Source: Zygnema circumcarinatum SAG 698-1b
Lineage: Eukaryota; Plantae; Zygnematophyceae
Length of the DNA stretch: 64,000 nt
Assembly (NCBI GenBank): GCA_037447605.1
Contig: CM074821.1
Span: 930,001 to 994,000, forward strand
Direction of reading: 5' to 3'
Under the pieces are notes generated by a model, which was given only the letters and a program-made list of their open reading frames with translations, was not told where the DNA came from and did no database searches. Position numbers and translations under genes: made by a program. How positions within the stretch are numbered: position 1 is the first letter of the stretch; the number at the start of each line of letters is the position of its first letter. Below, piece by piece: positions 5,401 to 52,818 of the stretch.

Positions 5401-7356
5401 CCTCCTTCTGCTGAAACAGGGGCCAATCCCAGTGCGCCACCTGTCACCAAACCCAAAACCCCAGCAGACCCATCCTCCACCTCATCAACTCCGGCGAAGA
5501 AATCAACCCTAAACCCTAATGCGAAGGAATTCAAACTAAACCCAAATGCAAAAGTGTTCACACCGGGCTCGTCCACATTCACTCCTCCCTCTGCCTCTCC
5601 CTCTCCCTCTCCCGCTGCCCCTCCTCCTCCCCCTTCTGTAGGAAACAACCCTCCTCGCCCCATGAACCCTAGCATGGTTTCCGGCCCTATCTTTCTGCCA
5701 CCTGGCATGATGCCATCGGCCGGAATGCAGATGCCTGCCATGATGGCACAATTTGTGCCTCAGGGAGTGCCAGGTCAGCATGGGCCATTTCCTGGCCAAT
5801 ACAATGCTGCCATGGCGGCCTACATGCAGCAGGGGGGGGGGGGACCACCGGGGACATTCGGAGTGCCAGGTGGCGTTCCGGGAGGGGTGCCAGGTGGCGT
5901 CCCAGGAGCCATTATGCCAGGTCAGCAAGGGATGAAGCTGCCGCCCCATTCGCAGCAGCAGGTGGGCCATCCATTCATCTGCCTCTCCGAATGAATGAAT
6001 GAATGAGAATGAGATGAGAATGAGATATTTGAAACTCAGAATTTTCTGCATTTCGTAGAGTTTTCGGGAGGGGGGGGGGGGGGTGTAACACTTTGAGGGA
6101 TTTTCTGCATTCGTCCAAAGGTTGTACATTTAGGTATGAACTTCAGTCTCCGAGAAAGTGTAACTGACAGAAGTAGATACTCCGTATGTAACCAATTGGG
6201 CTCTGCCAGGTGGCACCAATATATGTGCAACAGCAGCAGGGAGTGAGAGGCTACCCTCCCCAAGGTCCCGGCATGCAGGCCGGCCCTCCCTATATGTATC
6301 CCAATGGCCAGCAGGTGAACATCATACCATTCATTCTTGAAAAAAAATAAGGAAGAAAGTTGGTCTCTTGAATCTCTTTTTCTATCTTTGTTTCCATTGC
6401 GAAATGAGCAAAAAAAAACTCGAAAGACTTGAATTTGGCTGGGGGGTGTGTGTTTAGGGCTTGTGGAGTTCCCTTACATAGAGGGTGTAAGATTTTTTAG
6501 GGGATAGTGGTACGTCTATTGGGTTAGCAAATTGGGCATGTTCTGATTAAGGTTTTGGAAGGGTCTGTGTTGCTTGCAGGGCATTGTGTATGGGCCGCAG
6601 GGGCAGATGATGTACATGCATCCCGTGCATCAGGTGCGTATGTTAAGGATCTTACTAATTCCTGCACCTTTTGCTTCCTTTTGACTCTTATCTCTCCTCC
6701 TCTCTCCCACTCTCACTCTCTTGCTCTCTCTCTCTCTCTATCTCTCTTTCTCTCTTTTCCTCTCTCTCTCGCTCTCTATGTTTCATCAATCTTCCTCACT
6801 ACAAACAAGTGATGTGGTATGTTACTGTCATGCTTCCCTAAGTACTTTACCTACCACTCCTTGTCCTCATTTTTGCAAGAGGGAGGATATGGGAGCTCAG
6901 CAAATGATGCAGGGTCAGCCCATGGCCCCCCCTCAGGAAGGAGGCCCCCCCATCCCCCACCCTGGAGGAGGCCCTAAGCACCGAGGTCCAATTCCATACC
7001 CTAAACCCTAAACCCTAAACCTATTCCATGTAAAACCCTTCTTGCTACCCCTATCCTCCCACCACGTTCTATGCAAAAATATGAGCAATTCTGTAACCTC
7101 TTCCTTCCATGCAGGCGGCGGCCCCGTTCCGGTGCAGTTCCACGGGCCAGGTGGCGGCCCCCTATTGGCTCCCGGCCAGCATCCGGCCATGCTTCAGCAG
7201 CATGGGCCCCCCCCTGGTGGGCCCCACCCCCCTCCCCCGCCCCCAGGGGGGCAGCCCGGGCCACCCCCTTCAGGGGGAGGGGGACCCATGATGGCAAACG
7301 GAGGAGGGCAAGGGAGGGGGGGGGGAGGAGGACCAAAGAATGGAGGGAGTGCGTGA
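748..7356 (+). CDS. ATXN2: Ataxin-2-like / CID3-CID4 class PABP-interacting protein (LSm + LsmAD + tandem PAM2, P/G/Q-rich C-terminus), multi-exon
   Basis: Spliced exons 748-1360 (DRFVLMATCLIGQTVEVQTKLGPVYTGIFHT, SM-ATX), 1497-1633 (GVVLKMAR...), 1915-~2114 (LVTDTGIS...ERELKPW), ~2209-2380 (NWDQFEANKSLFGVESTFDENMYTTRL...IAREIE, LsmAD). Tandem PAM2 KKSTLNPNAKEFKLNPNAKVFTP at ~5500-5565. Last exon ends GGPKNGGSA* at 7356. Middle exon boundaries are approximate and an upstream exon cannot be excluded (CAG directly before the ATG region). Confidence 0.92.
910..1070 (+). repeat. Coding trinucleotide repeats (GCA)12 then (GGA)n, giving polyAla12 and polyGly (28 uninterrupted)
   Basis: Direct reading of 910-945 (GCA x12) and 961-1044 (GGA x28) in the ATXN2 frame. 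Confidence 0.95.
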
Positions 7357-9208: not shown

Positions 9209-9654
9209 GCGACACGCGCTTGCAAGGGGCGACGGCGCTGGCGAAAAAGACGGCGGCTGGAGGCCTTGTAGCGGGAGGTGGAGGGGGAGAGAGAGAGGGA
9301 GAGGGAGAGGGAGGAGAGGAGGGAGGGGAAAGAGGGACAGGGAGAATAGGGAGAGGGAGGAGAGGATAGGAGGGATAGGGAAAAGAGAGAGAAGGAGGAG
9401 AGGGAGAGGGAGAGGGAGGAGAGGACGGAGGGGAACGAGGGAGAGGGAGGAGGGGAGGGAGGGGAACGAGGGAGAGGGAGGAGAGGAGGGAGGGGAAGGA
9501 GGGAGAGGGAGAGGAGAGAAAGAGGGAGGAGAGGAGGGAGGCGAGGGAGGGAGGGAGGGAGAGGGAGGAGAGGGCCTGGGAGGTGAGGGAGAGGAGAGGA
9601 AGAGGGAGGATAGGACGAAGGAGAAGAGGAATAGGGGAAAGAGGCGAGGCCTCC

Positions 9655-12471
9655 ATGGCGGTGTGTGCAGGGGCGAAGGTGCGGCCATGGCTGCTGTTGT
9701 CACTGCTCGTTTTGGAAGGAGTGTGGGTGGCGCACGTGAGCGAGGCCCGGCAGGTTCAGGTGGGAGAGAGGAGAGAGAGAGAGGAGAGAGGAGAGCGGAG
9801 AGAGGAGAGAGGAGAGAGGAGAGAGGAGAGAGGAAAGAGGAGAGAGGAGAGAGGAGAGAGGAGAGGAGAGAGGAGAGAGGAGACAGGAGAGGAGAGAGGA
9901 GAGAGGAGAGAGGAGAGAGGAGAGAGGAGAGGAGAGAGGAGAGAGGAGGAGAGGGAGAGGGAGGGAGGGAGGGAAGGCTCCGGTAATGACTATGGCGATG
10001 AGGGTTCAGGAGGAGATGAAGAGAGGGAGGTTTGGGGGCGAGGGAAGGGCTTAGGTCTAAGAGGGAGGTGGGGCCGTTCGTGTACTGCCAAGGAAGGAAG
10101 GGCTCCTGCATGGCTGCAATGGTTGGCAGCCATTGGCGTCGTACCAAAACAAACATTGCCAACCAATGGTTGTCATCCGTCGGTAACCATTCAATCGGCC
10201 AACCGTTGCCATCCAATGTTTGGCCAATGGTTGGCGATCCAATGGTCCGCCCTGAGCCGAGTTTCCGCATGGAAGCTAACCACTAACTTTTGACCAAAAG
10301 GAGGCAGCTGCGGACTAATAACTAACTTACAACTGTATGACTAACCAGACTTTAGTCACAATACGTTGAGTTTTGCCATAATAATTGGACTCTTTTGTTC
10401 AGTCACGTCATGAGTATATTTTTTTCTTAATCATTCCTATAAGCAACTACATCTAAACAAAAAAAAAAAAAAGGTTCAATCCCACGTTCCCCTTTGAACA
10501 AAAAAAAGGTTGGTGAGCTGTAAGCAGAAGTCACGTCCGGCTAATAAATTATAGTTCGTAAATGGTTAGTCTGTCTAACCATGTGTACACTTGTACGGAA
10601 CGTACTTCATCGCTAACCCTGAACCCTGAACCCTAACCCTAACCCTAACCCTAACCCTAACCCTAACCCTAACCCTAACCCTAACCCTAACCTTAACCTT
10701 AACCTTAACCCTATCCCTAACCCTAACCTTAACCCTAACCCTAACCCTAACCCTAACCCTAACCTGAACCCTAACCCTAACCCTAACCCTAATTTTCAAG
10801 GTCTGCGCCTGCTCTGCTCTGCTGTAGGAGGGCCGCCTTCCTCTTCTCCACGCCCGCCCGCCATGGGCGACCTCGGCCTCCTTCCTCGGCGAGGCTCCAG
10901 CAGACGACGCCGTGCGCCTCTCCATCCACCTGCCATGGCGGAACGCCGCCAAGCTCGTGGAGCTCGCGCAGGCCGTCTCCTCTCCTCAGGGGGGAAGCTA
11001 TGGGAAGTTTCTCTCAGGGACAAGCTTCAGGGAGGCGCACAGCCCTGCAGAGACTGACTTTAGCGCGATTCAAGAATGGCTGCAGCAAGAAGGGTTCAAA
11101 ATTGTGCATACTTCTGCAACGAGGAAGTTCGTTATTGCAGAGGGGACGGTGAGGCAGGCTTCTGCAGCGTTTAGAACAAGATTAGGGTTATACAAGGTGA
11201 GGATGCCATGGAGGAGGAAGGGAGGATGGGGGGGGGGGGGGGTATTAGGTGTACAGAAGTTGATGGTTAGAACAAAGTTAGAGTGTGGAACGGCAGTGAT
11301 GAGAGGAGGCAGAGTTGTGTATTGCGAGTGAGTGGTGAAGCATTGGGAAGGTCTGCGGGTTGAATCATGCGCAGCAGAAATGTGAGGGTGTATAGGACTA
11401 TTGTGAATTGAAACTTGGAGACCAGTGCAGCAAAAACGTTTCCTTGCATTGTGCTTATTTTTTCTCCATACCTTGTCTGCGTTGCGCCCACAGGTCAACG
11501 GTCTAAGTTTGCGTGCTCCTTCATCGTTACCGTCGATTCCGCAATCTTTGAGCAAAGTAGACGGCATAAACATTTTAGGGTTGCATCAAGACTGGGCGCT
11601 GCAACGGCCCTTTTACGCAACTCGAGGAAACTTGTCAGCTCCTTTGGAAGGCAAGAAAATCAAAAAGCAAGCTGCGGTGTCGACCAGTGACGAGGAGTGC
11701 GTTTTCAATTTAGCCAAAACTGGATACTCGACATTTCCTGATTGCGGATACTCGAGTTCACAGGTGAGCAGAAGTGGCGCCGAGTACACTTTTGTATCTC
11801 CTTATCTTGTGCCCTTTGTAGTGAAGACTTGCGTTCCGTTTGTTCCTGTTAGATGTGAATATCAGGAATCGTCAATTGTAGGACACAGATAAAGGGGACA
11901 GAACCCTGTAAACTCCCGAATCATGTAACTGTATACAATGGCAAATTCTCCACAAACCCTAAAGTCCACGAAAAGGCTTTGCCGATTCTCGTATGTTTTC
12001 CCTGCACTGCTGCTTCGTGTTGATCTACTTTGTGCTGTTCCGTCGCAGCTCCGATCCGCATACGAAGTTCCGCCAAAGTTGACAGGGAAGGGACAGAACA
12101 TTGCCATAGTGACCCCATTTTCCTCTCCCTTCGTTCAAAATGATCTAAGCATCTATTGCCGGCAGGCAGGAATTCCGTCAACTTTTATTAAACAGTACTT
12201 TCCGACCTACTCTTATAACATTTCTGAGTCGCTGCTTAATCCTGCTCCGCCTTACGAGCCCGGATGGGCTTCGGAACAGACCCTTGATATTGAGGTTAGA
12301 TGCTTGTTCCCTGTTCTCATATCTACCCATAACACATCTCTCCTTCACTGCATCCATACATAGACATGGAACGACTTGGATCCTCCTTCATTAATGTTTA
12401 CTCTCGCTGTTTGTATCCCAACAAGTGCATCCTGCCAGCTCTCAGTCTCCAGCAGAAGCAGAATCAGAAAG

Positions 12472-12519
<48 letters not shown>

Positions 12520-15406
12520 ACTTCATTTTGTTGAACTACTTTCTTCTTTTGGGGCGAAATTCAGGCTGTGCATTCCATTGCCCCGGGTGCTACTTTGCAC
12601 TTTTTCGCTGCGAGCTCTCCTTCGGATGCAGATGTGATCGCGGCCTTAGAGGCAGTTGTGGACTCGGGGGTTGCATCCATTGTCAGCAATTCATATGGTC
12701 ACATTGTTCCCCCCACATGGTATCAGAGTGCTGCAGCCACTCTGAACCAGAATCAGGTAAGCCCCACCGACCCTTCACTTCAAAACCGTAAATTTTATAA
12801 AGGCTTCTGTTCACACGAAGTTGAGGATATTACGTGAAAGTCGTAAATCCTAAAGGACCTTAATGACTGACTTTAAACAGGGTCCGATATACGATAAGCC
12901 CAAAAATTCGTCGTCTAAACTCGGATATCTAGGGACCCTAGAAGTCAATAGCTTCTGATTTTAGAACCCTCCCTATTGTTTTTTTTTCAGCCATGGACAG
13001 ATGTTTTGATCCAAGCCGCAGCTCGTGGAGTCGGTGTCTATTTTTCGAGTGGAGATAATGGGGACGAATCAACGGAAACATCATATAATAATCAACCATT
13101 AACAAATTATCCCGCGAGTGACCCATGGGCAACTGCAGTTGGAGGGACCTCTTTAGGCATAGATGCGAGCAACAAGCGAAACATGGAGGTCTATTGGGGT
13201 AATTATTATAACTCACAGTTTGTCGGAGGAGCAGGGGGCGGCATATCTGAAATTTATGGAGTCCCCTTCTATCAGAAAAGTGGGCCTGCTCAGTCGTTCA
13301 TTAATAAGTACGTGAAGGGTGCGAAGGGGAGAGTAGTGCCGGATATCAGCCTCGTTGGAGACCCCTTTACAGGGTAAGCTGGTTAGCACTTGGTTGTGTT
13401 CCCTCTCTCCCTCACTCTCTGTCACTCTCTCAACCACCTCTCACATTTCTTTTCCCTCAGTTCCCCCTTCTTCCCCCGCCCTGTTTCCCCTTTTTCTTCT
13501 CTCCCTCTCTCTCCCATGACTCTCACCTATCCCTCCATTTTTCCTCTCTCACTTCGCCTCTCTCCCCCTCCCTTCCCATATATTTCGTCTCTGCCCCTCC
13601 CTCCCTCCCTCCCTCCCTCACCTCCCCTCCCTCCCTCCCTCCCTCCCTCCCCTCCCTGCCTCCCTCCCTCCCTCCCTCCCTCCCTCCCTCCCTCCCTCCC
13701 TCCCTCCCTCCCTCTCCTCCCTCCCTCCCTCCCTCCCTCCCTCCCTCCCTCCCTCCCTCCCTCCCTCCCTCCCTCCTCCCTCCCTCCCTCCCTCCTCCCT
13801 CCCTCCCTCCTCCCTCCCTCCCTCCCTCCCTCCCTCCCTCCCTCCCTCCCTCCCTCCCTCCCTCCCTCCCTCCCTCCCTCCCTCCCTCCCTCCTCCCTCC
13901 CTCCCTCCCTCCCTCCCTCCCTCCCTCCCTCCCTCCCTCCCTCCCTCCCTCCCTCCCTCCCTCCCTCCCTCCCTCCTCCTCCCTCCTCCCTCCCTCCCTC
14001 CCTCCCTCCCTCCCTCCCTCCCTCCCTCCCTCCCTCCCTCCCTCCCTCCCTCCCTCCCTCCCTCCCTCCCTCCCTCCCCTCCCTCCCTCCCTCCCCTCCC
14101 CTCCCTCCCTCCCTCCTCCCTCCCTCCCTCCTCCCTCCTCCCTCCCTCCCTCCCTCCCTCCCTCCCTCCCTCCCCTCCCTCCCTCCCTCCCTCCCTCCCT
14201 CCCTCCCTCCCTCCCTCCCTCCCTCCCTCCCTCCCTCCCTCCCTCCCTCCCTCCCTCCTCCCTCCCTCCCTCCCTCCCTCCCTCCCTCCCTCCCTCTCCC
14301 TCCCTCCCTCCCTCCTCCCTCCTCCCTCCCTCCTCCCTCCCTCTCTCCCTCCCTCCCTCCCTCCCTCCCTCCCTCCCTCCCTCCCTCCCTCCCTCCCTCC
14401 CTCCCTCCCTCCTCCTCCCTCCCTCCCTCCCTCCCTCCCTCCCTCCCTCCCTCCCTCCCTCCCTCCCTCCCTCCCTCCCTCCCTCCCTCCTCCCTCCCTC
14501 CTCCCTCCCTCCCTCCCTCCTCCCTCCCTCCCTCCCTCCCTCCCTCCCTCCCTCCCTCCCTCCCTCCCTCCCTCCCTCCCTCCCTCCCTCCCTCCCTCCC
14601 TCCCTCCTCCCTCCCTCCCTCCCTCCCTCCCTCCCTCCCTCCCTCCCTCCCTCCCTCCCTCCCTCCCTCCCTCCCTCCCTCCCCTCCCCTCCCTCCCTCC
14701 CTCCCCTCCCCCCTCCCTCCCTCCTTCCCTCCCTCCCTCCCTCCCCTCCCTCCCCTCCCTCCCTCCCTCCCTCCCCTCCCTCCCTCCCTCCCCTCCCTCC
14801 CTCCCTCCCTCCTCCCTCCTCCCTCCCTCCCTCCCTCCCTCCCTCCCTCCCTCCCCTCCCTCCCCTCCCTCCCCTCCCTCCCCTCCCTCCCTCCCTCCCT
14901 CCCTCCCTCCCCTCCCTCCCTCCCTCCCCTCCCTCCCTCCTCCCTGCACTGCCTTTTCCAGCGAAGAAACAGCGTAGAGAGGGTAGCTAACTCTGTAAGG
15001 GCTCCTGCTTACCAGGTTCGTCTACGGAGGGTCCTCTATATTGCTGGACAATGGTCCGTCGCAGTCTACGGAACAGCGTTACTACCAGCCAGTTTACATG
15101 ACAGGCATCATCGGAGGAACGAGTCTCTCCTGTCCCATAATGGCGGCCTTTGTTGCGCTTGCACAAGAACAAACTGGCAGAAAATTTGGGTTTATAAATC
15201 CCTTACTTTACGGCCTTCCCAACTCTTCCTTTGTTGATATTGTGAAGCCCTCTAATCCCATTCAAGCCAAGATAGGTCAAAACGGCATCTTGACTTTTGG
15301 GGATGCCCAGAAAGGGCTGATTTTGGCTAAGGGGTTTGATTCAGCGACGGGGTTGGGTTCACCGAGTCGATCTTTTTGGTCAGATCTGGCAAAAAATAGT
15401 GTATAA
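9655..15406 (+). CDS. Secreted sedolisin / S53 serine-carboxyl peptidase (signal peptide + pro-kumamolisin-type prodomain + catalytic domain), 7 exons, ~651 aa
   Basis: Exons 9655-9759, 10828-11196, 11494-11763, 12049-12294, 12565-12756, 12991-13373, 15016-15406 join in frame through GT-AG (1956 nt). Motifs: EQTLDIE (catalytic Glu/Asp), [16 protein letters not shown] (oxyanion Asp), [32 protein letters not shown] (catalytic Ser), [19 protein letters not shown] (Ca site). The exon 1 donor could be 6 nt earlier. Confidence 0.93.
10614..10792 (+). repeat. Interstitial telomere-like (CCCTAA)n, ~30 hexamers, in sedolisin intron 1 just upstream of the acceptor
   Basis: Direct reading, with a few CCTTAA/CCTGAA variants. 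Confidence 0.95.
13600..14945 (+). repeat. ~1.35-kb essentially pure C/T (CCCT)n tract in sedolisin intron 6 (13374-15015)
   Basis: Direct reading. It is the source of the spurious 615-aa and 443-aa ORFs. Confidence 0.95.
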
Positions 15407-21858: not shown

Positions 21859-24800
21859 ATGGCAAGGCTGCTACAGACGCTGCTGGATAAGATCACATAT
21901 GTGGAAGAGGAAGAGGATGACAGCCAGCCGGAGTCGCCGTCGGAGAGGAAGAGGGAGGGGAAGGGGAGAGTGAAGGGGAGGAAGAAGCAGGAGGAGGAGG
22001 AGGAAGTGGATGAGGATGAGGAGGACGAGAGTGAAGAGGAAAGGTTGAGGGAGAAGAGGAGGGAGAAGGAGGAGAGGAAGAAGGAGAGGAGGTTGAAGGA
22101 GGAGAGTATGCTGAAGGAGAAGCGGGAGAAGGAGGAGAGAGAGGAGGCGGCGAGGTTGGAGAGGGCGAGAGAAGAGAGGATGATTAAGGGGAAGAAAGAG
22201 AAGGATGAAGAGAGTGCCAAGGATAGGAGGAGGAAGGAGGAGGAGGAGAGGGTCAACGAGGAGAGGAGGATGAAGGAGGAGAAGAGAGTGAGGGATGAGG
22301 AGATGGCTAAGGAAAAGAGAATGAAGGAGGAGAGTGCGAAGGTGGAGGGAGGGAAGGAGGGGAAGTTGAAAGAGGAGAAGAAAGAGAGTGAAGAGAAGGG
22401 GAAGAAAGAGAGGAGGAGCTCCTGGAGGAGCATGTTGTGGGGAAGCAAAGGAGGGGGAGGATCTCTGGGAGACGCGAAGGACCTCCTTGTAAGGCCTCTT
22501 GCAGGTGAGAGAAATATGTACGGAGAGTAATTCAGACTAATTGAGATGGTAGCCTTGTTTGATCTGCTCTCTGCGATAATGTAGTTCTGAGCATATTTTG
22601 AAGGAGGTATTGGGGGAGGGCGATCAGATTCGGAGCTGATCTAACTTTAAAAGATAAAAATTGGGTAGTAAAAGGCTTTCTGTTGCTGTTTGACATTCTC
22701 TCTCTCTCTCTCTTTCGTCCTCTCTGTCTCCCCCGTCCTACTTTTACTCTCTCATTTGTGTGAAACGATTACTGGTGAGTTCTCGTAATTGTGGCCTTAT
22801 TAGAGATCCGCCGTGACTATAGTTCTATCCAAATCATTTGCAATATTTGCACACGTGGTCTGAATGTGAATTCCCGTTAGCGTTACACTAAATCACTCCT
22901 TTCTGAGCGTGTTCTCAGGGTACATTGCACATCCTTTTTGAATGCATACATTGAGCTTAAATGCTCACTCTCTCTCTCTGCCCTGGTTGTAGTTTTTATT
23001 TATCTGAGAAGTTCCGGACTTCAGATAGCCTCAGGGTAGAGGACTATCTTAGAGAAACGCGGAGGACCTCAAATCGTAATACATTAGTGTTAGTGATACT
23101 GTTACTGTTGTTCTTTTGTTATTGCTCCTTTTTTTTTTTGCCAGTACTCTCTCTTCACTCCTCTGTAAGCAGTGAAGTTTGGATCTCTGGTCATCGATGT
23201 CTTTTCCTCCTCTCCAACAAGCTCCGTTTAGGTGGTTTATTCAACAATATGGAAGTATTATTTCTCCTTCTCCTTGATGCCTTTTTTTGAGGGGTTTCAG
23301 GTAGTGGCACGAAGACTCCTCACACAAAGGGAACCAAAAAGGTCACTGTGGTCGGAATCGGGATGGTGGGAATGGCCTGTGCCCAAACTATACTGACTCA
23401 GGTAAGTAAAGAAGGGCTCGACTTTTTCAAAGCAAATGTACAAAAGCTCAATCTATCCGAACCATGACACTTGCAAACCACACTAACGCGAGTGTTAATC
23501 CGACCTTTTTGATGACGAAGTTCTCTGCATAGAGGGCTATCGATGTTGGTCTTCATTGTTTTTTCTGATACAAAGTTTGGATATTCTGATTGCTGTGTAC
23601 AGCACCTCTGCGATGAGCTTGCCCTAGTCGATGTCTCCTCAAAGAAGCTGGAAGGCGAGCTGTTAGATCTCCAACATGGAGCCGCTTTTCTGCCACGTGT
23701 AAAGATAATGGCTGATACTGATTACACGTAAGAGCCTTTTTTTTAACTACACAACCTATAATCGATAATAGGCTGATACAAATGCCTGCAATTATGGCCG
23801 CTAATACACACTATAACAACATTTTCTCATGAGACTGATGTTATCTCCTTTGGCTGCATGTGAGTTCAGAGTGAGTGCAGGTTCAGACATCTGCATCGTG
23901 ACAGCTGGAGTTCGGCAACAAGAGGGTGAATCTCGCCTTGCTTTGGTAAGGCAGAAACTCAAGGCCTGAAAGGAACGTTCCTAATGACTTTAGTTGGCTT
24001 AGAAATTCTCCGTTTTTTCCTTGTGACGAGATAAAAGCCTTGGTTGCATGTGGCCTATAGCTGCAGAAGATGAGGTAGCTACAGCTAGCTAGCAGTACCA
24101 AAAAAGTATAGGTGAGAGTTTGGAAGAGCTAAGAAGAAGGTGACTCCTTGATTCAATATCAAATATTCATGGCAGCCATTTTCCGCTCCTTAGCTTTTCC
24201 CGTTTCCCTCCAGGTTGGCCGAAATGTAGCGCTGTTAAGAAACATCATCCCTCCATTGGTGAAGTACTCTCCCAACACGGTTTTCATCGTCGTGGCGAAT
24301 CCGGTGGATATTCTTACTTATATTACATGGAAGCTGTCAGGTCTTCCGTCAAATCGAGTGCTCGGTAAGCTTCTGCGTCTCACTCTGCATCTCTCTCCCC
24401 NNNNNNNNNNCCCCTCCCCCTCCCCCTCAATGTTTCATAATATGGTGCAGGGAGTGGGACAAACTTGGACTCCTCTCGCCTCGCGTTCGTCATAGCGGAC
24501 GCCCTTGAAGTGAACGCGCAGAATGTGAACGGGTACATCATCGGCGAGCATGGGGACTCGAGTGTGCCGGTCTGGTCATCCATCAGCATTGCGGGCGTTT
24601 CTCTAGTTGACTATTTGCGCATACAGAACTTGAAGATGGGAGAAGCCGAATTGCAAAAAATCCATAAAGAGGTAAAGTAGAGAAGGCTCTCTGAATGGTG
24701 GCTGAATTCAGGTGTATTTTTTCAAAGCCGAAGTTCTTGAAGACGTTCGCGGGCTGATTTTTCTTCATCGTATACTGTGCTTGAATGGTGGGAATTGACC

Positions 24801-25537: not shown

Positions 25538-26746
25538 GGAGAATACGCGGCACAATATTCTTACTATTTAATGTTCTTCTACTTGACCTGTATGCCAGTA
25601 AAGCTGGTTGTGAAGAAAGGTACTTAAAAAAAGAAAGAAAAAAAAGAAAGGTACTGCTGAGGTAGAAGGAAGGACTGGCTAACTACTAGCCCTCTTTTGT
25701 GTACTGTAGTTGGTAGAGTGGAGGTCAAGCATGGAGAAGGTTCGGTTGTCTCTGTTCCCTTATTTTGGCTTGTCTGCGTGACAAGTGCTTTGACAGGCAG
25801 GTAAGTTTCAAAGGGGTCAGAAAGAACCGCATTCAATCATCATGCTGGCGAGTGAGTGCTTTGAAGGTTGCACAATTGGAAGCATCCAAGAAGCTTTATT
25901 CTTGATTAGTTTATGTAGGAAGGTGTTGTGGGCTTCACGTTTGGCAATTGATCAAACACTGTCGCGCGACCCTACTGTAATTGTTCCAACCTTCATTGGT
26001 TGGTAATTGTTCCAAATTTCATGTGGTAAGTAATAAAAAAGTCTAAGATTTTCAGCCCCTGTCCTCTTGTGTAGGCAGATGATAGTGGTCCTCTCCTCTC
26101 CACTCCATTTCTCTCGTAGAGTAGAGCCAGATAGTGAAGTATCAAACATCCTCTGATGTTTGAATACCAACCATGGAATTTGATGCACATGCGCGCCACA
26201 CATCACTTGCCAATGTCGACCACACATGAAATTGGTCCTCGCAGTTCCACGTAGTACACATAGCCCACAAGTCAATATGAGAACAAACATGAGTTCAACA
26301 TGCCACCCTGGGGACCTTAGCCATGCACTCGACTATTCTTTCTCCAGAGATCAAGGGTGCAGAAAGGTCAGAAGGGTCCGCCCTCAATTGCTGAATTTTG
26401 GGCCGGCTCGGGGGTGGTGGCTAGAGATATCTTTAGGTACCTAGTGCACTCACAGTATAGCTAGACTAGCTCCTACCCATAAGCCTGAAAGGATGGTTCG
26501 GCCTCATTGCTCTCTCCCACTTAGATCACGTCCACTGTGTCTATCGTCGGTTACTGTTTTTCGAAGATGGAGCGTAGCAGCTACTTTTTGCTGAAATCTA
26601 CCCAACAACTAAACCCACAGGAGAATGTCCCCCGGCTCTCTCCACTGAATCATCCCAAATGATCTGCGATTGAATTATGTACTCTTCCCCCCCTNNNNNN
26701 NNNNTTACTGATTCTGTTATGAAGTTCAAGAACTGCGAATAGACTT

Positions 26747-29423
26747 TTAAGGTGAGGAGATGTTTGCCTCCAGCTCTGCGGCCAGCTCCCGTTCCCGCCC
26801 AAGAATTACGTCCACGTGGTCCCTTCCGGGCACACACTTCACCGACACATTTGAGTGCAGCTGAGAGAGCTCCAAGCTGCCTGAAAACGGGCAGATGGGG
26901 TCATTCGAGCCGTGAATTATGGACACGTGGCGCCCATGAGAGCGAAGAATCTCAAAGTAAGAGTTCACAAGGCGGGCCCCCCCACAGACAGTGTTGTGAA
27001 ATGTGTGCCACGCGGAGTAGTGCGTGTGCCGCATGAAGTCCCGAACAAAGGAGGGAGGAACTCTGCATGCAGTGAAATACAAAAGTCCGTTACAAGGAGT
27101 CGGAGAAGCAGTCAACAGCTCCAATAATCTAGAAAACCCAAATCATAAAAAACGCCACTGTAGCAAAGAAAGACCTTCAGAGCAAGCTCACCGTGTTTGT
27201 ACGAGGAGGGGTAGAGCTTGAGAGAGAAGAAGCTCCCACAAGCGGTGGCCACGGCAGAGGATGGAGCAGAGGAGGCGGCCGACATGCTCGTACCATGACA
27301 TGATGCTGATGCCCAATGTGAGCGGCGGCCATGCATGGCGAGGGGCGGTGCTGCGGAAGAAGGCGAGAGAGGGGTCTGCTCCAGGGGGCGCTTGGACGTA
27401 TGGCTGCAAAGGGAAGTGAGGAGATGGAAGCATGAGAAGGGGCATTTCATTTTATTATTATTATTATTATTATTATTTTTTTTTTCATTTCATTTTTTTG
27501 GCCAGCTGACTGGGCATGCAAGGCTGTTCAAAGGGGGAGGGGGAGGGGGAACAAGGAGGTTACTTGCCCTCCCCACAGCAAAACCACACAAGCATTCGTA
27601 TAGGTATGAAGTTTTTGAAATTGGAAAAGGAATGATTAAAGAGATCTGGGAGGGATGGGGAGAGGAAGGCAGTAATGAGAGCTTGAGAGAGAGGTCACTT
27701 TCCGTTATTAGGGAGAAGAGATGGAGGAAGGGAAGGAGAGTGAGAGAGGGGGTGCAGAGCAGGAAGTAGTCTATAACAAAGGATGTGATGGAATGGAGGA
27801 GGAACATACCGGAGCAATGAGAGTGATGCTGCAGATTCTGTTGGCATTGCGAGCAGCCAAAGCGAGGGCCACAACACATCCCATGGAATGTGCGACAATG
27901 TGAAACCGCTCAACATGGAAGCGCTCCAATACCGAGTGTTCTATCCGGCTGCATATCCACCGATCAAAGTCAATAAAAAGCACGAATCACATGCCAGGAA
28001 ACTGCCACAGTGGAAGATTGCTTCTGTAGAACATTTGACTGCACCTTTCAATCAGAACAACTCATGCCATCACTAGTTTTCTCCCCCTTTGACTGCGGCT
28101 TTTTCCTATCATGCTTTTGGTTTTTGAAGAAAAGCAAAGGAAGAGAGAACCCGTTCTATCTTTGAAAAGCTGTTGTGAGTCGTAACTGATTTCTGGAAAC
28201 CAAACATTGACTGCTTTTGCTCACCTTACATGATCCTCCATCGTGTACCCACAATCACGGGGCTTTGGGCTTTCTCCAAAACCCAAAAGGTCGACAGCAA
28301 AGAGTCGATAGCTATTTCTAATCTTTGGAGAGAGTCGAGGAATGATGGTGTCAATCCAAAAGGAGGAGGAAGAGAGGAAGCCATGGATGAATATGATGTT
28401 GGAGTCTGAATTGCTTTTAAAGCAGAGAGAAGCATCTTTAAACGGAGAAGGCAAGAAGCTCTCAGAAGGAAAACTCATCGAACGGTTCATTAGAGGAGGG
28501 GCATTGCCAGTTTTTAAGTATGAGTTGGGAATCCGAGGGAATGTAGAACTCTCCGTTGGCCGAACTACCCCACTCTTTAAAGTGGCCTCTAGCCTGTAAA
28601 GCAATTCATTGAAGCTGCTCTTAAACACTCCATCCTCATCCCTTGCTAATTCAAAAGTAACCTTTTTTCTTCTTCTGTTCTTACTACCCGTGCTTTCATT
28701 CCATTGCCACAAGACTCTTGAGCATTTCTTCGTCGACGAAAATGCTTCCAACTCTTCTCCCATCTCCGAGTTTATCTCCAGTTTCCCCAGAGCTGAAGCT
28801 CTCTTCTCTCCTCCTCCTCCTCCTCCTCTCTCCCTCCCCTCCACTCTCACAAACAGGTGCCCGTCCCCTCTCTCCCACACCCGACACGTGGCGCACTGAC
28901 AGTCTGTCCACCTCACCGACGTCCTCGCCTTTGTCATTGCCAGTGGAAACTTCGTGGGTCCTTCCGAAAAGGCACCAATGTCTTCCTTAGCCGAACTTCC
29001 CCATCCAAACTCTTCAATATAGAGAGCTCGAGAGGGAGAATTCGCCGTGCTCCTAAGCAGCCAATGCCTCAGTCCCCCCTGCGTCCACGTGGCAACGCTG
29101 CGAATCCAAAATCGGAGCCCCCCCATATTCTCCCGCCCTCGAATTGTTGCTGAAGGGGAGCTCCATGATGGGGGGGGGCATCCGCCATGGATAATAGGGC
29201 CCTCTTGAGGGGAGGAGGGGCACAATGTGGGGGCTTTATGAGAGCCCAAAGGCGGGATTGGGGGGGAGCAGGAGCATCCTTCCCAGCGCTGGCAGAGGAG
29301 GGAGTCGAGGAAGGAGAAGAGGGGGCAGAGGAGGAGGTCGAGCACGTCGAGGAGGAGGAAGAGCAGCGCGCTGAGGGAGAGGAAGGCGACCCTCTGTAGA
29401 GCTCTCACGATGCTTCTGAACAT
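26747..29423 (-). CDS. BDG: BODYGUARD-family alpha/beta hydrolase, multi-exon
   Basis: N-terminal FLLLDVLDLLLCPLFSFLD...WEGCSC (BDG-type N-terminus); IFIHGFLSSSSFW; FAVDLLGFGESPKP...YTMEDHV; SVLERFHVERFHIVAHSMGCVVALALA (nucleophile Ser); RHTHYSAWHTFHNTVCG; IHGSNDPICP (Asp); RDHVDVILGRE (His). Confidence 0.9.

Positions 29424-38741: not shown

Positions 38742-52818
<14,077 letters not shown>

Follow-up and report, generated by a model that had tools for sequence, protein, structure and literature searches.

How does an alga closely related to the land plants come to carry the gene of a bacterial-looking S53 peptidase, and did it capture that gene from bacteria itself? To our knowledge, S53 peptidases lie outside the standard set of land-plant proteases. 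Here we describe one such gene from Zygnema circumcarinatum SAG 698-1b. It lies in a 64,000-nucleotide stretch of contig CM074821.1 (GenBank assembly GCA_037447605.1, positions 930,001 to 994,000, forward strand), which we call the window and whose own numbering is used throughout. A preliminary description, made from the sequence alone, had proposed a secreted sedolisin of bacterial type, domesticated by the alga after horizontal transfer.

The S53 locus is a working, expressed nuclear gene. On balance we favor reading its product as a secreted S53 pro-peptidase belonging to a small, old eukaryotic clade, which probably stems from one ancient bacterial transfer, and not as a recent bacterial capture by the alga.

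A spliced S53 gene with intact catalytic residues

The gene occupies 9655-15406 on the plus strand and encodes, in seven exons (E1 to E7, Table 1), an S53 (sedolisin/kumamolisin-type) pro-peptidase whose frame is intact in the three-frame translation and the DNA. All six introns are of the GT..AG type. E1 offers two further possible phase-0 donors, after 9753 or 9759, and the choice of donor sets the protein length at 643, 649, or 651 amino acids (aa). The 651 aa proposed earlier fit only the donor after 9759, and the two shorter products are possible too. One RNA contig (X1) extends 171 nt upstream of 10828, and the E1 donor in use is not visible there. The signal peptide in E1 is typical as called by eye, and the N-termini of the relatives are hydrophobic too.

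Splicing was checked with contigs from four public runs of three studies, placed on 10828-13380. The joints 11196/11494, 11763/12049, and 12756/12991 are present in spliced contigs of all four runs, and 12294/12565 is present in those of three, so that introns 2 to 5 are confirmed exactly. Intron 6 is supported by a loose end of the contigs at 13375, which runs on into the first bases of E7. Depth in the four runs is 20 to 200 over exons and 0 to 7 over introns, which is RNA-seq-like behavior. Splicing, gap-free linkage, and host-type repeats together place the S53 gene in the host genome as an integrated and expressed gene. The 64-kb window contains no second S53 copy.

E2 matches Pfam PF09286 (Pro-kuma_activ) with an E value of 5.5e-24 and 85.5 bits, against a cut-off of 23.5. 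E6 alone finds kumamolisin (1.7e-8) and TPP1 (2.9e-7) in the PDB. No exon and no clade member matched NCBIfam. Set against three full-length relatives (alignment A1), the exons follow one another with no gap at any junction. Catalytic residues were located through the kumamolisin alignment of one relative, P0003, onto E78, D82, D164, and S278, with E6 also aligned directly. The catalytic Glu (12274-12276) and Asp (12286-12288) in SEQTLD of E4 align with E78 and D82, the oxyanion-hole Asp (13054-13056) in SSGDNG of E6 with D164, and the catalytic Ser (15122-15124) in GGTSLS of E7 with S278, and so the S53 order Glu, Asp, Asp, Ser is kept. The Ca-site motifs, VDI and an 11-residue stretch, are present with both Asp ligands. 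VDI and AKGFD align with HDI and GPGWD of kumamolisin, and the first Gly, a main-chain ligand position, is replaced by Ala. By homology to solved S53 structures, the catalytic domain would have a subtilisin-like fold. The complete seven-exon gene with signal peptide, prodomain, and catalytic residues that had been described from the letters is thus borne out by the DNA, Pfam, and the alignments, the signal peptide by eye.

Relatives, phylogeny, and shared introns

A pattern scan with E6, covering one genome per prokaryotic species, returned 26 loci with 31 to 52% identity to E6 in the best segment, mostly from Actinomycetota and Ktedonobacteraceae. E6 was also searched exhaustively with HMMER against 1.84 billion cluster representatives. 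The top three matches were EukProt transcriptome open reading frames (ORFs; P0001 to P0003; 53 to 55% identity, E values of 1e-30 to 1e-28), with bacteria next. No match exceeded 55%, so the algal protein itself is outside that library. Eukaryotic sources also supplied P0276, P0076, and P0095 (EukProt) and P0133, the last being a single ORF flanked by untranslated sequence on RNA-like Logan contigs. The word prefilter of the full-length searches (8,000 candidates) missed known members of the clade, and a blank for named eukaryotic relatives in those searches is accordingly weak evidence.

Summed over exons, the algal protein is 44 to 47% identical to the four inner-clade proteins P0001, P0002, P0003, and P0276, 39% to the best bacterium (a cluster of a Nitrolancea metagenome-assembled genome), and 35 to 37% to other bacteria and the outer eukaryotic members. 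Identity is locally higher in the first 25 aa of E3, which are 68% identical to the bacterial P0171. The members of the clade differ deeply among themselves (41 to 57% identity). Over the same 127 residues of E6, scores reach 109 bits at most against bacteria (local BLASTP), and phmmer scores kumamolisin at 38 bits and TPP1 at 34. Full-length P0003 gives 118 bits with kumamolisin, 70 with TPP1, and 44 with sedolisin, and P0001 gives 350 to 380 bits with bacterial long S53 proteins. By these scores the algal enzyme is far closer to the bacterial long S53 proteins than to kumamolisin, TPP1, or sedolisin. The bacterial (actinobacterial or acidobacterial) affinity over TPP1 that had been proposed from family features is therefore upheld by bit scores, in a comparison that covered these three enzymes. 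A TPP1 orthologue was considered and rejected, since the bit scores are far lower and only the C-terminal part of P0003 aligns to TPP1.

Two trees were built, one of 88 rows and a careful one of 69 rows (LG+C20+F+G4 with posterior mean site frequencies). The seven sequences from eukaryotic sources form one clade in both, with 100 in the Shimodaira-Hasegawa-like approximate likelihood ratio test for 88 rows and 100/100 for 69 rows. Together with 56 core bacterial sequences, this clade splits from distant prokaryotic S53 sequences at 95/96. In the distant group are L004 and L016 (Ktedonobacteraceae and another Chloroflexota bacterium), the Thermoplasmata archaeon L021, and the unlabeled P0099, P0129, and P0102. 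P0099 has a TPP1 match of 84 bits and no kumamolisin match. The nearest and next-nearest relatives of the eukaryote-source clade are thus both prokaryotic. In the free tree the clade adjoins a mainly actinobacterial group, with weak intervening nodes (75/74, 59/88, 80/92, and 84/62). When each exon was placed as a separate row on a fixed backbone, all six of E2 to E7 fell individually inside the inner clade; because every one of them lands there, a chimeric gene is disfavored.

Introns tie the alga to other members of the clade. The short ORFs P0035, P0415, P0046, and P0047, which fall near the clade, lie on the metagenome contigs L032 (ERZ28593383), L035 (ERZ27272769), L034 (ERZ27272769), and L033 (ERZ25067493), respectively, and the S53 genes there are split by introns. 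L034 resembles P0076 in type and the other three resemble P0133. All four contigs have two introns in common with the six of the algal gene: intron 3, in phase 0 between ...GY..Q and [LI]R[SK]AY, and intron 6, in phase 2 inside the Gly codon of DP..G. In L034 the exon after the shared phase-2 intron begins at the start of E7 too. The remaining introns are lineage specific. By our own estimate, an exact coincidence would be expected by chance about 0.01 times per gene pair over some 1,900 coding positions; with two introns shared, both must predate the split of the three subclades. It follows that the gene was already eukaryotic and intron bearing long before the lineage of the alga became distinct, and that any secondary acquisition by that lineage had a eukaryotic donor.

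These four contigs show that environmental eukaryotes carry the S53 clade. L032 and L035 hold near-identical genes from different samples. Prokaryotic gene callers cut the intron-split genes of all four contigs into pieces. Pfam gave no match for the neighbors of these homologues, and hence no taxonomic clue.

Origin of the algal gene

Under the reading that we favor, the common ancestor of the eukaryotic clade would already have carried at least two introns. The clade itself most likely goes back to a single ancient transfer from a bacterium to a eukaryote, because its nearest relatives are the long S53 proteins of soil Actinomycetota, Chloroflexota, and Acidobacteriota. The alga would have its copy either by vertical inheritance, the gene having been lost many times elsewhere, or from a eukaryotic donor. 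The horizontal transfer first proposed thereby survives in part: an ancient bacterial origin stays likely, as the clade joins prokaryotic S53 sequences at 95/96, while the lone gene domesticated by the alga does not agree with the shared introns or with the nesting of the gene, at the first level, in a well-supported eukaryotic clade (100/100).

Several points weigh against this reading. The direction of transfer rests on the rooting and on the far greater diversity of the bacterial sequences, and TPP1, fungal sedolisin, and physarolisin sequences are outside both trees. A sister tree, which sets the clade against all 56 core bacteria, matches the free tree in likelihood: with thorough searching under LG+F+G4, the log likelihoods are -69125.1 and -69126.7 and the approximately unbiased (AU) test gives p values of 0.55 and 0.48, respectively. 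An initial AU p value of 0.003, which seemed to prove nesting in the core bacteria, was an artefact of a fast constrained search, and thorough searching gave an equal tree. Since the sister topology is as good as the free one, nesting in the core bacterial group is not established. A EukProt label by itself has no power to exclude contaminants among the eukaryotic relatives; a contaminant origin of these relatives is nevertheless disfavored because the environmental homologues carry introns. The RNA label of the four runs is a guess. Secretion, acid activation, and substrate are predicted from family knowledge.

Among the alternatives, a recent and direct transfer from a bacterium in the alga's own lineage, followed by the gain of all six introns, appears improbable. 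It would suit the bacterial nature of the nearest non-eukaryotic relatives, and also the presence of Pro-kuma_activ/S53 in filamentous Zygnema and its absence from three unicellular Zygnematophyceae reported by Feng et al. 2024 (PMC11096116), who list Pro-kuma_activ as an exception to the families found outside Phragmoplastophyta as well. The best bacterial identity is only about 39%, however, closer relatives from eukaryotic sources exist, two introns are common to distant members of the clade, and the S53 gene is fully host-like in composition and repeats. Those shared introns would suit a donor among eukaryotes. If the lineage of the alga took an intron-bearing S53 gene from another protist or alga, the very patchy streptophyte distribution would be accounted for, and most of the streptophyte and chlorophyte genomes sampled are reported to lack the family (PMC11096116). 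The relatives all come from sparsely sampled transcriptomes or metagenomes, which would also suit such a donor, but without taxon labels on them no conflict with the species tree can be demonstrated, and vertical descent with repeated loss fits the same data. We regard this eukaryote-to-eukaryote transfer as unlikely, though worth some weight. The same small chance is given to the broader statement that the gene came, introns included, from another eukaryote and represents a rare, undescribed group of eukaryotic sedolisins, anciently derived from bacteria and missing from land plants as well as from most green algae. On that reading the enzyme may scavenge extracellular protein or remodel wall or mucilage in filamentous streptophyte algae.

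The equal standing of the sister topology in the AU test, together with the deep divergence within the clade (41 to 57%), would allow an ancient S53 paralogue inherited vertically in eukaryotes, with the bacterial enzymes as true sisters or as recipients from eukaryotes. We consider this very unlikely: the next groups outward are prokaryotic too (L004, L016, and L021), thousands of bacterial members across phyla stand against a handful of eukaryotic ones, and those other S53 enzymes of eukaryotes for which structures are solved lie much farther away. A contaminant, a misassembly, or a pseudogene, for which only the bacterial look of the protein speaks, has a negligible probability. The GT..AG introns are removed in RNA contigs of three studies, the reading frame and catalytic residues are intact, and linkage to eukaryotic genes is gap free. 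Contamination and misassembly in particular are ruled out by the spliced spliceosomal introns, the host-type repeats inside them, and the unbroken connection to the ataxin-2-like and LDH-like genes; the earlier argument from introns and flanking genes was sound.

Predicted function, genomic setting, and known systems

From knowledge of the family, the signal peptide would direct the zymogen to secretion, and the Pro-kuma_activ prodomain and the linker would be removed autocatalytically once an acidic compartment (cell wall, mucilage space, or vacuole) is reached. The mature enzyme, of subtilisin fold, would then cut peptides with Ser as nucleophile, Glu as general base, a supporting Asp, and an Asp in the oxyanion hole, and one Ca2+ would stabilize it. 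An acid-active, secreted protease is a reasonable prediction on these grounds. The S53 enzyme offers a concrete candidate for acid-active extracellular proteolysis among streptophyte algae.

An expressed S53 gene in a close algal relative of land plants lengthens the list of bacterial-type secreted hydrolases there. The correction made here is that the clade of the gene is eukaryotic and old and has conserved introns. The gene should accordingly be left out when lineage-specific bacterial captures are tallied among the horizontal transfers linked to plant terrestrialization. The Zygnema S53 genes of Feng et al. 2024 (PMC11096116) likewise document S53 in a streptophyte alga, in a domain-level mention without phylogeny, intron comparison, or expression detail. 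Pro-kuma_activ is not mentioned in the text supplements of that paper, and a literature search found no other paper mentioning the Pro-kuma_activ/S53 domain in algae or plants.

Table 1. Exons, selected introns, and neighboring features of the S53 gene in the window
Feature	Position	Strand	Description	Basis
Exon 1 (E1)	9655-9735	+	Start codon and predicted signal peptide (first 27 residues)	Read from DNA
Intron 1	9736-10827	+	Holds GA-rich microsatellite and interstitial (CCCTAA)n telomere-like tract at ~10610-10792	
Exon 2 (E2)	10828-11196	+	Pro-kuma_activ prodomain	Pfam PF09286
Exon 3 (E3)	11494-11763	+	End of prodomain (11-residue motif), then linker of ~90 aa	Alignment with eukaryotic relatives
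Intron 3	11764-12048	+	Phase 0, between ...GYSSSQ and LRSAY	
Exon 4 (E4)	12049-12294	+	Start of catalytic domain; SEQTLDIE with catalytic Glu and Asp	Alignment
Exon 5 (E5)	12565-12756	+	Catalytic domain (AVHSIAPGA...VSNSYG...)	
Exon 6 (E6)	12991-13373	+	Catalytic domain, SSGDNG; ends in phase 2 in Gly codon of DPFTG	PDB matches
Intron 6	13374-15015	+	Phase 2; nearly all a 1.6-kb pyrimidine (CCCT/CT) microsatellite	
Exon 7 (E7)	15016-15406	+	GGTSLSCP with catalytic Ser, Ca-site motifs; stop TAA 15404-15406	
Ataxin-2-like gene	SM-ATX 706-1467, extends downstream to ~8000	+	Long Gly/Ala-coding tract	Pfam
LDH/MDH-like gene	Ldh_1_N 24148-24399		Interrupted by 10-N gap 24401-24410	Pfam
Abhydrolase_1 domain	28221-29420	minus		Pfam

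Between positions 1 and 24400 there is no run of N, and hence no assembly gap between the S53 gene and the ataxin-2-like gene (Table 1). Besides the gap in the LDH/MDH-like gene, the window has 10-N gaps at 26695-26704 and 45640-45649, three in all. Microsatellites of the purine or pyrimidine kind seen in the S53 introns occur again at 21942-22253, 43700-44243, 46888-47868, and 48645-49035. Very long, strand-asymmetric microsatellites also lie at 13394-14998, in intron 6, and at 9216-10075, where a GA-rich tract runs across the 5' end of the S53 gene, exon 1 included. In the intron 6 tract, ORFs of 615 aa (Pro/Ser/Leu) and 443 aa (Gly/Arg/Glu) arise that are spurious and could deceive gene callers. 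The telomere-like tract of intron 1 is of the hexamer type, with the variants CCTTAA and CCCTGA, unlike a short CCCTAAA x3 of the plant heptamer type at 6999-7019.

Of the known systems, the uncharacterized long S53 proteins of Actinomycetota, Chloroflexota, and Acidobacteriota are in the same length class (about 620 to 700 aa), with 35 to 39% identity over all exons. As in the alga, their prodomain is followed by the LRAP...P.IP motif, a long linker, and then the catalytic domain, and they give the best local BLASTP bits outside the eukaryotic clade for E2, E3, E6, and E7. Their annotations read "S53 family peptidase" or "protease pro-enzyme activation domain-containing protein," and similar clusters in the Atlas are labeled "Physarolisin II family protein." They have no introns and lie in compact gene neighborhoods (e.g., L029), whereas the algal gene has six introns and a predicted eukaryotic signal peptide. 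Kumamolisin (Bacillus sp. MN-32, PDB 1GT9/1T1E; MEROPS S53) shares the Pro-kuma_activ prodomain, Glu78, Asp82, Asp164, Ser278, and the Ca-site Asp with the algal enzyme, but it is distant (38 bits over E6) and lacks the linker of about 90 aa, which in the algal protein terminates in a Cys...Cys-Gly-Tyr motif in E3. Opposite kumamolisin position 32, which is Ala in the matched chain, the algal enzyme has a non-acidic residue. TPP1 (CLN2, PDB 3EDY/3EE6), the textbook example of an S53 family member in eukaryotes, is likewise made as a zymogen and acts in an acidic compartment, but it is much more distant from the algal enzyme (34 bits over E6, and 70 bits for P0003) than are the bacterial long S53 proteins.

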